Of a DNA stretch of 64,000 nt, positions 30,701 to 57,700 are shown in pieces (positions within the stretch are counted from its first letter, which is position 1; every line of letters starts with the position of its first letter). Under the pieces are notes generated by a model that saw nothing but the letters and a program-made list of their open reading frames with translations, did no database searches and was not told the DNA's origin. This DNA is from Thalia democratica. Lineage: Eukaryota. The translations under genes and the position numbers were made by a program. The stretch covers positions 72,354,001 to 72,418,000 of the forward strand of contig OZ241829.1 in the NCBI GenBank assembly GCA_965202585.1, in the 5' to 3' direction.

Positions 30701-33700
30701 CCTGCCACCCATCTGCGTTGTGGTTTCTGCTGAAAGGATAAAAAGCTCCAACTTGCATCCATCTCAAACACAACTCCAATGTTGGTTCTTCCCAGAAACC
30801 GCAAATGTCTGCTCCTACCTGTTGTATATAAACATAACTTGGTAACATATTGTAATTATAAATGTACGTTCACCATATAATCTGCAAATATCCGTTCCAA
30901 CATGAGAGTGAACAAATAAAACATATAAATTTTACTATGTGTTGCACAAGTATTGATAAACATACCATTATTCAGTATTTTCGTATGCATTAGTTCAAAA
31001 AAATATTTTTAGCGACTTGTTATAATTAAAAACACATAACTTCATAATTTAATGTTAAGTTTAGCTAATAAAGTCTTAAAAAACAAAGCATACTAGTATG
31101 CTCGACAGTCGAAGCATCTTAATCTTTTAATACTTGTCACTTAGAAAAATATAACAAAATATTTTAAAACAAAGACCCACCATAGCAAATTTGAACAAAT
31201 TATGCTCAACCATCGATGTTATAGAACCTCTCGAATATTGCCAGCTAGCAAAGTGTTAAACAAAATTTAAAAAATACAACTCACCATAGCGAATCCGAAC
31301 AAGTTGTGTTCAACGATCGAAGTGATTGAGTCTCTCAGTTGTTGCCAGTAAGCCTGATTGTCCCCAGTCCACGTGGCCGCTTTGCTACCAGTTCCGGGGT
31401 ATGATGACCTGGTCAGCACCAAACTTCTAGTGTTTGGCATCAGTGTCTGTATTTAAGTTTGTTTGTTTAACATATTTTTATATGATAACTTTGTCAGTAG
31501 TAAACCTCTTGGCATCAATATCTGGTTAAAATGGTGATGTACATGTTTAAAAAATATTTTATAATTTACATATGACGATCTCGTCTGCTCTTAAATAATT
31601 TTTTTCATAAAAGTCTATCTTAAGTTCAGTCTGTATTCAATATTGATTTTATATGATGATCCCGTAATAAGTAAAGTCATGGTGTTTGTCATTCAACTAA
31701 TGCTAGTGTAAAAATACGAAAGTGTGTCAGTCAACTTCTGCAATTTTTGTGATCATAATTGTTTTTAAAAGTAATTCGTTTGTATTTTGACACTTTAAAA
31801 TTTTGTTTAAATTATTATTTTTTAATTGTAAGAGAAACAAATACCTCAAGAGTTTTGTGAGTTGTAGTGGCCATTGTATGCCCGTACAAACTGTGCAAAT
31901 TGTAATGAAGTTTATTTCCATATTGCAAGTTGTCCATGCATATTGTCTTGTCGTGCAAACCTTTCTCATATCCGAGTATTCCTGTTAATATATGTAATAA
32001 ATATTATAAGCGAAAAAATTTGATTTTAGAAAAAATACTCCTGTTTTTTAAGTATGTTTTAATCACTTTTTGGTAAAATTTGTTCCAAAACACATTAGCA
32101 CAATCTATATTTGTTCTATCATAACAAATTTACGGTATTTATTTTTTATGGTAAAAAACATCAGTCTCAAAATTTACCCCTTGCAACGATAAACGTTAAA
32201 ATTATTAAAATAAACAAACTTATTGCAATAGTAAGATCTTAAGTAAAGATATAGCCTATTCAAAAGATTTATGTGTGGTAAATTATTTTTTATGGGTTTA
32301 TGTACAACTTTAATTTTTATCGTTTTCTATGTTTTTTCTTTTGTCTTTTAAATACATATAAATTTTAAAACTGAAGCCAATTTAGTCATCTTTAGAAAAA
32401 TCAAACTAACTAGGCATGTAAGGTGGCAAATTATATTTTTAAACGCTATTCATTTTAGATAAACTTTCTAAGTAACTAGTTTAAATGTTTATCAACACAA
32501 ATTTATTTAATACTTAAATACAATTTTATTAAACAAACTAGGCATATAAGGCGGGAAGTTGTATTTTCCTGTGCAGTTCATTTCAGCTAATTTAGCTGGA
32601 TCATCTGGTTGGAAGTTTGCTGGTTCGTTCATATCCTGTTGTGATTGTACATAACTAACCGTGCAAAGTTATTGAAGTTACTTATTTATTAAATTCTTTC
32701 AAGATATTTTAAACCAGACTCAGTTTCGTTCAAAGACCTCTTCAGTGCTTATTTAAAAAATCTTATTGAAATAAAAATCCTCTAGAAGTTGAGATCTTTT
32801 TATAAGTTTTCGAAAAATCAAAACATATAATAGTAAGTTACTTATTTTAGATTCGTAATTAGTAGTGTCTACCTCATTTAGAGGGTATAAATTTAAACAT
32901 TGTCTAGTATTTAATAATCCTTGTATTTCATAATCAATAAAAATGACAGTTTTACATAAATAGATAGTATAATAACAACTTTTAACTTACCACCCACAGA
33001 GCATCAAATTCGATTCTGTAATTTTCATATAAATCTCTGCACTGTTCAGTCCACCATCCAGTTACGTTTGGATGAGTGTAGTCCGGGTGGTATGTTGCAC
33101 CGGGCCATACCTATATAAACGAAATTTATAAAACTATACAGCATATCATATTGATAAAAATAAAACTAAGTGATGTATATATTATAGTTGGTATAAAATG
33201 CATTTAAAGCTAGGATGAGTATAATCAGGATGATAGGTTGCACCCGGGCCATACCTATATCTTGAAATTTCTTAATAATCAGCCGTAGGTAACGTTTAGA
33301 CACAATAACTTAGTATGTCTAGTGTTTTTAATATAAGTGTTAATTAAAGCTGTCTGTAATTCGTATAGTATGTTGGAACAAGCAACAATCTTTATAAGGA
33401 AATTAACAAATATTTATTATATACAGATAACTCGGATGTCTATTAAACTAAATACAAGTTTTATTTAAAGATAGGATGAATATAAGCTGGATGTTGTGAT
33501 TATACATACCTTTGTAGATAAAACTTGCAAATACGTAGTAGTGTATATAAATGTTTTATTAGTATGACTAGTAAAAAAAGTTATGATTAGTGTTTAAAAA
33601 CAGTTTAGGATTAGTTTTAAACAGGATTTTATGGTGACAGTTCCAGACCATATACAAGCGTGAAAAAGCCAACTTATGTTTTAAAGTCAAATAAGTCAGA

Positions 33701-54700: not shown

Positions 54701-57700
54701 TATTTTTTTAACTTCAATTTTCAGTTATATCTATAAGCCTTATGACTTAAACAAACAAGAATGTTATTTTTTTTTAACATCATTGTATTCTAAGAAAAAC
54801 TGACCGGCTTAAAAAACATAAAACAATTTTTCAATAATTAGAACAACTTAACATTTTGTAAATTTTCGAATGTATAGACAAAAAATTAATTTTAAGTTAA
54901 TACGAAAACAAAAGTTAACTATAAGTAGCCTCTTGAAAGCTAATGTTAAATTTAGACTATAACTAAAAGAGCTAGTAAAAAAGAAGATGTCTATTGTTTT
55001 TTAAAATGCTTTTCGACAGAAGATAAGGTAAATTAAAAATTAGGGTAAAAAAATATAATTAAACATCAATATACCATATATATTCTATACTCAGACGATC
55101 TAAAACGAAAGATGAAAAATTAAAAGTCCAGAGTCCTTCGCGCCTAACACACAATGTTTAATACATTTACAAAGTACATCAAAAAGTATTTTCAAAAAAA
55201 AAAAACAGAAAACTAACAATCCAGAGACCGTCGTACTCCATTTGAGATCTGAAATCAACGGATAACGTTTTCCACCATTCAGCGGTGGACGGTTTCGCGA
55301 AATCAGGAAATGCTACCACTGCACGGTACAGCTTAAAAAACGGCTAGTGTTATAAATAAATGACTATATTTGTTTTTAGAGTTAAAAAACAAACTACTAT
55401 CCGTTTTTGACAACAATAGATGATAAAAGTTATTTAATTACTCTAAAATAATTTATGTGTTTTATAAGTTTAATATTATCGTTAAGGGATTCTTTGTCAT
55501 AATATTAAAAAATCTAACAAAAACTTAAAGATTAAGTAGATTGAGACTCTTAGGATGTTTTATAGATATCAAAATTTCTTTAAAGTTATATTGAAGAGAC
55601 TTTTACAAAACTTTGTAAGACAATTTTTTTTGAGATATACCAGTTTATTATGCGTTTATTTACAACATCATTAACTAAATATAAAAATTCAGTATTATCT
55701 AAGCATATATATATATTTTTGAATGACGAATCAGTATAAAAAACTTTCACAACTCACCCTCACTTGTTCGTTGAAATCAAGGGAGTCATCCACCTCAACA
55801 TCCGGGTAATCTGGCCAAACTTTCCCGAATGCAAAATCATCTCCATCTATAACAATATTTAAATATATGATTATACCAATCTATATTTATATGATATATA
55901 CAAAAATTATCCCAACCATTGTCCTTGATGAAAACGTCTTGATCAACACCTGTTGTGAATGGTGGGTAGGGGTCCGTTTCGTTGACACTTATTGCTGGAT
56001 CCAAGATGATTATGTACCTATAGGTAAAACGATTTCTTTTTATAATTTAGTTTTTATTGTTATGATTTTTTTTACTATTTTAATTACTTTGTATTATTTG
56101 TACATATTTCCAACTTTTCAATTAATATAATTAGACTCAAAAGCATAAAACTCTTGAACAAGGTTCAGGTCAAAATAGGTTTAAGTATTTTAGTGTACTT
56201 TACGCATAATAACGAGATTAAAATATCACTTTTTAACATTTTTATTCATAATTGTTTCTACAAAGGTTAAACTCACCTCATATTGTGATAAGTTTTAAGT
56301 TCTTGTACGTACTCAGTCAGTCCGTCATAATTGATTGGATCAATAGTGAAATCGAGCTGTCTGTTCATGTAATCAATGTCTGAGTATTGGGTTTCCTGAA
56401 ATTTTATGTCGTTGATAATGAATGATAACTGAAAGCTTATTAAAGACTAAATATACTTACATTTAGTACGCGAATTGCATTATATTTTTATAGTGTACGA
56501 ATGTGGTTTTGTACAAGCAAAAGATCTACGAATTAATTATTTTAAACTACTTCAACATGTTGTACAAAGTCAGTAAATTTTAAAAGTAGTACTACATCAA
56601 ATAAAGTGAACTATTTTAAATAATAATTTTTCTCTGGTAGCATTTGCGTAAATACAACAGAAGTATAGTAGAACTTTTGTTGTAAATTATGTAGCAACAT
56701 TTAAAAACTTATATATGGTTTGCATTATTAGCCTGCATTATTTCTTAAATAAAGTTCATTAATAAAAGTTTGCATCAACAGATATGTCAATTAAAAATTT
56801 TAAAAATAATTAAGCGTAAATGAGCAACAACTATTAAGTATGAAACTTCAAATTAAACTTTTGTTGCTCTCTCATGAACTAAGTGAGCAGAAAAAATATT
56901 AAAACTATCAAGATAAATACCACATTAGAAATTACTCACGTAAGGCATGTCAGTAGCCAACATGCGGTCCACCACAGTCTTCAAATTGTCCAAGCTGTTG
57001 TAACCGTAGCGACACAGCTGGAAGCCCAAAGCCCACAACGGGGGCATGTAGGGCCTCCCTACCAGCTGCGTGTACTGGCCCGTGACGGATTCGGGGTCGG
57101 GCCCCATGAAAATTTCAAAGTTGAAGATGCCTCCTGTGGTTCGGTAGGTCAGCGCCGGTTTCGGTTGCAACTCGATCTCTAAATAAATAGAAAAAGTTAA
57201 AGCACACGTGTAAAAAAATTAAATGATTTTATGACTTTAATTTCGATCTCTTTATAGAATTTTTAATACTTATAAAGTATGCTTAAAACTAGGTGATATG
57301 TACTATATAATATGGTGCGGTACGTCAGCGCAACTCGGTTGCAACTCGATCTCTGAATGTAAGAAAAACGTTAAGTATATATAAAAGTGTATTAAATTGT
57401 TTTAACGTTTATAGGTTTTTGTTCTAGGTAGTTTTAGGTCAGTAACTTTTTTGTTGCAATTCGATCTCTGAACGGATTAAAAAAATCTCTTTTATATGTG
57501 TAATTATCAAAAAAAAATTATTTAAACTTTTGAACCGGGTTGCGATTCGATCTCTGATAAATAACATTAAAGTAAATTTGTATACAAATTACTAAAAAAC
57601 ATCAATGGTTTATTTATGTTTTTAAACAGGGTTGCAACTCAGTGTCTGTTTAAGTTATAGTTGTAAACTTTGCTTCAAAATATGTTTCAAAGTTAATTTA

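Follow-up and report, generated by a model that had tools for sequence, protein, structure and literature searches.

A predicted three-headed GH31 α-glucosidase gene of the tunicate Thalia democratica with Ct-type and Nt-type modules in the reverse of the vertebrate order

Sucrase-isomaltase (SI), along with maltase-glucoamylase (MGAM), completes the digestion of starch and sugars. Both enzymes are targets of drugs, and their two-headed architecture, with an N-terminal (Nt) and a C-terminal (Ct) catalytic unit, is usually ascribed to internal duplication. A locus in the genome of Thalia democratica (assembly GCA_965202585.1, contig OZ241829.1, positions 72,354,001 to 72,418,000 of the forward strand; this whole stretch of 64,000 nt is referred to as the window, and coordinates count from its first letter) raises the question of how old the two unit types are, and whether they have been joined into one protein more than once. 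A preliminary inspection of the letters alone (the sequence-only reading) had proposed that three GH31 modules lie here, two of Ct type followed by one of Nt type. We consider it likely that the window holds one gene for a type II membrane-anchored, stalked GH31 α-glucosidase of the MGAM/SI kind with three heads in the order Ct-Ct-Nt. The main value of the gene is evolutionary. It comes from the closest invertebrate relatives of vertebrates and appears to carry both vertebrate head types in inverted order; the split between Nt and Ct would be pre-bilaterian and far older than the fusion, and the tunicate order would be both reversed and inherited.

Gene model, architecture and module types

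The motifs quoted in the sequence-only reading were all located on the minus strand of the window, together with three copies each of GADICGF and DMNE. The span given there (32991-55846) runs from the loop exon of module 3 to the loop exon of module 1; the gene is larger (~27755-63605). It was modelled from tblastn anchors of 150 homologues (exhaustive search, with the module 2 catalytic exon as query), taking at each junction the GT-AG pair in closest agreement with up to six homologues, and letting splice consensus and comparison between modules decide weakly conserved junctions. The model has 8.3 kb of coding sequence without internal stops, every intron is GT-AG, the first modelled exon starts at an acceptor (ttttacag; acceptor at 63606, exon from 63605) and the stop codon is at 27757-27755. 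The window is AT-rich (G+C ~25-30%), the gene is eukaryotic and intron-rich, and the source assembly is 802 Mb. Further GH31 exons were found neither elsewhere in the window nor adjoining it on the chromosome. The main features, with the translation or motifs by which they were assigned, are as follows.

27755-63605, minus strand: the complete modelled gene, with ~2750 codons in a single open frame over 60 coding exons
63449-63605, minus strand: exon for the basic cytosolic stretch and signal-anchor helix (translation)
62460-63222, minus strand: Thr/Pro-rich stalk and P-type trefoil 1, in two exons, 63222-63027 and 62688-62460 (translation)
49193-63027, minus strand: module 1, GH31, Ct-type, residues ~111-999 (CRYGY, WI-DMNE across an exon junction, HWLGDN, GADICGFFQ)
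38775-48910, minus strand: module 2, trefoil 2 and GH31, Ct-type with shortened insertion, residues ~1000-1880 (CKYGY, WIDMNE, HWFGDN, GADICGFFD)
27755-38889, minus strand: module 3, trefoil 3 and GH31, Nt-type, residues ~1881-2759 (SKWNY, WVDMNE, TWTGDN, GADICGFW)
57014-57000, minus strand: CRYGY motif of module 1
45182-45168, minus strand: CKYGY motif of module 2
35462-35448, minus strand: SKWNY motif of module 3
33107-33081, minus strand: WPGATYHPD motif of module 3

The predicted protein begins with the basic stretch, signal-anchor helix and Thr/Pro stalk, followed by three repeats of a P-type trefoil plus a full GH31 domain. Exon translations of all three modules match the GH31 TIM barrel (Pfam PF01055) above the gathering score, and Pfam trefoil matches precede modules 2 and 3. 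An N-terminal anchor, a stalk and tandem trefoil-GH31 units in one frame make up the layout of MGAM and SI, as far as the prediction goes, and by its defining features the protein would be a GH31 enzyme of that kind, the order of module types apart. Vertebrate MGAM (structures 2QLY/2QMJ for Nt, 3TON/3TOP for Ct and 9KZ6 for the full length) has in common with it the type II anchor, the Thr/Pro stalk, a trefoil per GH31 and all catalytic motifs, and extra Ct-type copies occur in both (rodent MGAM is Nt plus three Ct), but identity is only ~45-50%.

The nucleophile and acid/base motifs read WIDMNE and HWLGDN in module 1, WIDMNE and HWFGDN in module 2, and WVDMNE and TWTGDN in module 3. When aligned with 50 others, all three modules keep W[IV]DMNE, GADICGF, the acid/base Asp of GDN, the xSRS/xTRS Arg and the His of RNH. 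Module 2 reads DVDTM in place of the DIDYM of the other modules. All three are apparently catalytically intact, and none looks dead.

For phylogenetic analysis, multi-module proteins were split into modules by profile and trees were built without the loop columns. The final tree (56 modules, LG+C20, careful maximum-likelihood search, rooted on GAA-like proteins) gives the same picture as an earlier tree of 46 rows. Module 3 lies within an Nt clade (13 rows, support 100/97) made up of two branches, one (100/100) holding the vertebrate N-terminal units (dog MGAM, bear SI, hagfish, shark, frog, turtle and lizard) and the other (99/96) module 3 with modules of Patiria, Antedon and Ptychodera. Modules 1 and 2 lie in a Ct-type clade (33 rows, 99/96) with a paralogue from the same genome, two metagenome proteins, the vertebrate C-terminal units, single-module genes of Aurelia, Orbicella, Nematostella, echinoderms, Saccoglossus and Branchiostoma, and a protostome multi-module clade. 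The Ct-Ct-Nt typing first proposed from motifs and loops is thus borne out module by module. GAA is of the same GH31 subfamily and likewise has a trefoil and a short WPGxT loop, with Trp at the CRWGY position, but it forms a separate clade, the outgroup in the trees.

The suggestion that Nt and Ct types predate vertebrates also holds, with Ct-type genes in cnidarians, echinoderms, a hemichordate and amphioxus and Nt-type modules in Ambulacraria, and it is well supported by these placements that both types are older than the vertebrate fusion. The Ct type is an ancient animal paralogue, and many invertebrates carry it as a gene for a single module, ~930-980 residues long. Such genes, annotated as 'maltase-glucoamylase/sucrase-isomaltase-like' (e.g. 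in Apostichopus, Patiria, Lytechinus, Saccoglossus, Branchiostoma, Nematostella, Orbicella and Aurelia), share their clade with modules 1 and 2 and have the 24-residue insertion described below, but differ in length and in having no fused Nt-type module.

Substrate loops and substrate preference

The segment between the WP motif and the xFPD/xHPD motif had been given as 24, 16 and 3 residues in modules 1 to 3, with CRYGY, CKYGY and SKWNY as the aromatic motifs. All of these were recovered by reading of the DNA, the value of 16 depending on a predicted donor. The exons concerned, placed by DNA reading and junction scoring, and one intronic feature are listed here.

55758-55846, minus strand: module 1 loop exon, part 1
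55218-55331, minus strand: module 1 loop exon, part 2, ending in GLWI
44124-44270, minus strand: module 2 loop exon, part 1
43613-43817, minus strand: module 2 loop exon, part 2, including WIDMNE
32991-33110, minus strand: module 3 loop exon, with an intron just before VWP and none inside the loop
44009-44063, minus strand: intronic 55-nt copy of the module 2 loop exon's 3′ end plus its gttagt donor, 91% identical to 44117-44171

The 24-residue loop of module 1 contains a phase-0 junction (exon end at 55758, donor gtgagt; next exon from 55331), with GAA CAA GTG AGG preceding gtgagt and CTG TAC CGT GCA GTG GTA GCA TTT CCT GAT following ttttttaag. The 16-residue loop of module 2 (predicted splice) also contains a phase-0 junction (exon end at 44124, donor gttagt; next exon from 43817), with GAC TAC CCT GAT GAT preceding gttagt and GAT TTT AAA GCG CAC GTT GCG TTC CCT GAT following tatttcag. 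The position and phase of this intron, six codons before AFPD, are the same in modules 1 and 2; it is absent from module 3, where the three-residue loop (WP-GAT-YHPD) is encoded by a single exon. In module 2, an alternative donor 9 nt downstream (44115, gttata), giving a loop of 19 residues, was the first choice of homology-weighted scoring; donor 44124 was kept because gttagt is a far better donor than gttata, and the loop could still be one of 19 residues. The intronic 55-nt copy lies 108 nt further in, and the frame is open between the copies; use of this second donor would lengthen the protein by ~36 residues (108 nt, in frame), with the GEVWP loop occurring twice. Among direct repeats of at least 25 nt, none was an echo of the VWPG exon of module 3.

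Across the 56-module alignment, loop lengths fall into two discrete classes, of 3-5 and 24-32 residues, and this division is not due to chance. Loops of 3-5 residues are found in the Nt clade, GAA-like proteins, protostomes and a separate 'WPPG' group, and those of 24-32 residues in the Ct-type lineage. The 24-residue insertion can be aligned from cnidarians to mammals (Orbicella, TFENVTVNSSLDWDEQTRLYRQYA; dog, DFPDVVINASLDWDSQVELYRAYV; Apostichopus; module 1), the first ten residues of the module 1 loop being those of Apostichopus and 14 of its 24 being common with dog CtMGAM. Module 2 is the sole member of the insertion class cut to 16 residues in this alignment and retains both flanks, and its 16 residues would represent a secondary shortening in its lineage, with eight residues lost; in its metagenome relatives the loop is 19, 26 or 28 residues long. 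Mapped on the final tree, the insertion was gained once and lost once, the loss being in protostomes, and an approximately unbiased (AU) test does not reject a single clade of all insertion-bearing modules (p 0.21). By this distribution the state without the insertion, as in Nt units, is ancestral, common with GAA and not diagnostic of Nt alone.

In mammalian CtMGAM, the 21 extra residues of the insertion in subdomain b1 form subsites +2/+3, where a Trp (human W1369, pig W1336) makes the main contact together with a Phe of loop 7, and the preference for maltopentaose over maltose is twelve-fold for CtMGAM versus one-fold for NtMGAM (PMC12805851). Module 1 retains the length of the CtMGAM loop, many of its residues as noted above, and the GFFQ of loop 7, and a preference for longer substrates is plausible for it. 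That specificity is graded with loop length across the three modules can be put forward tentatively, and two features weigh against it: the position of the insertion Trp is occupied by Phe in module 1 (LDFNEQ versus LDWDSQ), and module 2, without the Trp-bearing loop segment, has no counterpart of W1369. Because that segment is lost, the preference of module 2 is not readable from sequence.

The Trp of SKWNY had been taken as a sign of isomaltase activity in module 3, and here the earlier interpretation holds in part. Within QLSKWNY this Trp aligns exactly with Trp327 of NtSI (3LPO; QLSRWNY) and with Tyr299 of NtMGAM (2QLY), and the paper describing the NtSI structure reportedly links the position of Trp327 to α-1,6 specificity. 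The same Trp, however, also occurs in GAA-like proteins, in cnidarian Ct-type genes and in the Nt units of Ambulacraria, hagfish, shark and amphibians, and since it is so widespread it is an ancestral residue and no marker of isomaltase. Module 3 also shares with NtSI the short WPGxT loop and membership of the Nt clade, but isomaltase is the membrane-proximal first unit of SI and module 3 the distal last one, HWLGDN of SI corresponds to TWTGDN, and GFW of loop 7 matches Ambulacraria, not vertebrates.

It is possible, if doubtful, that loop length does not grade specificity at all, and that the protein carries three ordinary exo-α-1,4-glucosidases (maltases), with the shortening in module 2 reflecting neutral decay and the SKWNY Trp simply ancestral. 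The Phe of module 1 and the absence of the Trp from module 2 fit this, as do the GAA-like, amphibian, shark, hagfish and ambulacrarian units in which position Y299/W327 is a Trp; CtSI (the sucrase unit, in bear SI) moreover is no glucoamylase, and its 24-residue loop lacks the Trp. Module 1, however, keeps the loop length and more than half of the CtMGAM loop residues, an aromatic at the Trp position and GFFQ, and three intact heads in one protein suggest a division of labour, as in MGAM and SI. The proposal of graded specificity is thus weakened by the Phe of module 1, the missing segment of module 2, and the ancestral nature of both the short loop and the SKWNY Trp. The three heads, one of Ct type with Phe for Trp, a second of Ct type whose insertion is cut short and a distal one of Nt type, provide a natural set of loop variants, by which substrate preference could be related to the b1 insertion and to where a head sits on the stalk.

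Module order and origin of the fusion

All sampled vertebrate proteins, hagfish included, start with an Nt unit followed by one to three Ct units (Nt-Ct(-Ct) in MGAM), whereas the T. democratica gene specifies an anchor and stalk followed by Ct-type, Ct-type and Nt-type modules. The reversal of order relative to vertebrates noted in the sequence-only reading is therefore confirmed in this sample, and it is in this one respect, Nt first and Ct after, that the tunicate protein departs from the MGAM/SI plan.

A second example of the Ct-to-Nt order was found on a marine metagenome contig (L012, ENA ERZ27293408; 12 kb, 40% GC). Its protein P0310 comprises, in one frame, a Ct-type module, a trefoil and the start of a second module, the remainder of which is in the next frame. 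The second, Nt-type, module is sister to module 3 (98/96 in the careful tree), and the first falls in a clade of five rows (99/95) with modules 1 and 2, its tie to module 2 being weak (93/66). This protein resembles the tunicate one in having a Ct-type module, then a trefoil, then an Nt-type module last; it differs in being encoded by an intron-poor gene, in its 26-residue loop and in its hydrophobic C-terminal tail, and its N-terminus is cut by the contig end. Because L012 has a module-2-like unit followed by a module-3-like unit, the reversed order is inherited rather than an artefact. The source of the contig is, at a guess, a pelagic tunicate. At the end of the metagenome protein (L012:4168-5481) there is a Ser/Thr-rich stretch followed by the hydrophobic tail (...LLKCLTISFLAIFVIFI), which suggests a C-terminal or glycosylphosphatidylinositol-type anchor, and the Nt-type head may be membrane-proximal in that protein.

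In the scenario that we favour for the T. democratica gene, modules 1 and 2 would derive from an ancient Ct-type lineage marked by the b1 insertion of ~21-24 residues, and module 3 from an equally ancient Nt-type lineage without it, the two lineages having been separate genes already before the cnidarian/bilaterian split. Joining as Ct-Ct-Nt would have placed the Ct-type heads beside the membrane and the Nt-type head distally. The enzyme would act at the gut or cell surface and release glucose from α-glucans, with module 1 as the best candidate for longer malto-oligosaccharides, module 3 as a putative short-substrate maltase, possibly acting on α-1,6 linkages too, and module 2 of uncertain preference.

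Whether the tunicate and vertebrate Nt/Ct fusions were independent is roughly evenly balanced. That multi-headed enzymes with both types arose twice, as Nt-Ct in vertebrates and as Ct-Ct-Nt in tunicates, each by fusion of paralogues older than the cnidarian/bilaterian split, has in our estimate a little less than an even chance. If so, the 'internal duplication' of SI and MGAM would really be a fusion of ancient paralogues, and the tunicate enzyme a convergent solution with its long-chain heads beside the membrane.

It is unlikely, by comparison of the sampled architectures, that the common ancestor with vertebrates already had a fused Nt-Ct gene from which Ct-Ct-Nt arose by later duplication and rearrangement. 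Fused genes of mixed type do occur in both tunicates and vertebrates, which are sister groups, and the sampled Ct-type genes of amphioxus, echinoderms, hemichordates and cnidarians are single-module; modules also appear to be mobile in the T. democratica genome, module 1 being 64% identical to two tandem Ct-type modules elsewhere and 45% identical to module 2. However, independent tandem fusion of GH31 modules is recurrent (Nt-Nt in Patiria, three modules in Argopecten, two each in Homarus and Bulinus, three Ct in rodents), the Ct-to-Nt order is old in the lineage on the tunicate side, as L012 indicates, hagfish already has Nt-Ct, and no intermediate architecture is known.

Several observations weigh against a three-headed Ct-Ct-Nt enzyme of inherited order. 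Modules 1 and 2 are not the direct sister of vertebrate Ct units, and the backbone of the Ct-type clade is poorly resolved. Module 3 and its ambulacrarian and metagenome partners form long branches, and module 3 pairs with Ambulacraria, whereas the species tree predicts pairing with vertebrate Nt units; it also has Thr at the His position of HWxGDN, which is His in every other module. For the gene itself, an exon with a start codon was not found in the model and would be upstream of 63605 or outside the window, and no RNA run covering the stretch was found; the exon junctions, the single transcript and the 16-residue loop are therefore predictions.

The last two points, together with exon fragments duplicated in introns, would fit an artefact, in which a misassembly, a pseudogene or two to three neighbouring genes were read as one gene, which we regard as very improbable. 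The frame is open over 60 exons, the catalytic motifs are all intact, and between the modules there is no signal or anchor sequence. Module 2 ends within exon 38889-38775, which goes on to encode the opening cysteines of trefoil 3; by bridging the two, this exon places modules 2 and 3 in one predicted transcript. The runs that were found are DNA contigs of one sample only; they corroborate the genomic sequence, and short-read DNA unitigs are identical to 38118-38917. The same Ct-to-Nt junction is present inside one uninterrupted frame on L012.

Finally, an origin of the three modules as lineage-specific tandem duplicates of one tunicate gene with convergent likeness to Nt and Ct, the prospect that would have undone the typing, can be set aside as having almost no chance of being correct: tandem duplication is common among invertebrate multi-module GH31 proteins (Patiria, Argopecten, Homarus), but a single clade of the three modules is rejected by the AU test under the model used (log-likelihood difference 214, p-AU 1.8e-103), and Ct-type units from cnidarians to vertebrates carry a homologous insertion, by sequence as well as by length.

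Related loci and other features of the window

Two near-identical tandem Ct-type GH31 modules are present on the minus strand of another chromosome of the same genome (G000:C2:34642354-34666222; L003-L005). Both carry a trefoil and a 24-residue insertion (DYPNITTNDSWPVGEQTN.. FRAYV), the identity of each to module 1 is 64%, and the two could be one two-headed gene or two genes. An intron-poor GAA-like gene (G000:C9:21141000-21147700; L001), with a 676-codon open frame, CRWGY, WPGKTVYPDF and HWTGDV, is the only GH31 gene of the species in protein databases (P0086, 97% identical). At a further locus (G000:C4:38815159-38819186; L002) there is a compact GH31 gene of one module with the loop WPPGNSAFPDF; it falls into a group of its own, with good support, together with Pleurodeles P0410, Holothuria P0031 and the Logan transcript P0407, the last of which has four trefoil-like N-terminal segments (weak hmmsearch matches).

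An exhaustive search of representative sequences with the module 2 catalytic exon returned nothing above ~60% identity, and the intron-rich three-module gene seems not to be predicted in any database. No Ciona, Styela or Oikopleura orthologues were among the homologue-search matches or 30 cluster look-ups; because annotated tunicate orthologues were not retrieved in this way, the architecture may already sit unrecognised in Ciona or Styela annotations. A sea-urchin locus (L011) is too incomplete for a module count, and a literature search found no paper on MGAM/SI-like module types of tunicates or invertebrates.

Of the intron positions in the T. democratica gene, four are common to all three modules, two to modules 1 and 2, four to modules 1 and 3, and two to modules 2 and 3; the positions differ widely among the modules, which fits heavy intron turnover. 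At 41503-41556, comprising the 5′ edge of module 2 exon 41508-41360 and the preceding intron, five linked single-base differences, present in the DNA runs at ~40% of contig depth, probably mark a second allele. Contig depth at 40600-40799, in the intron between exons 41029-40889 and 40444-40316, is ~25 times that of neighbouring sequence, and this segment is probably a high-copy repeat. The segment 26053-26118, ~1.7 kb downstream of the gene, is an 80%-identical echo of 27727-27792 (end of the last coding exon and sequence after the stop), with a translation that includes VKHDHVIEWT.

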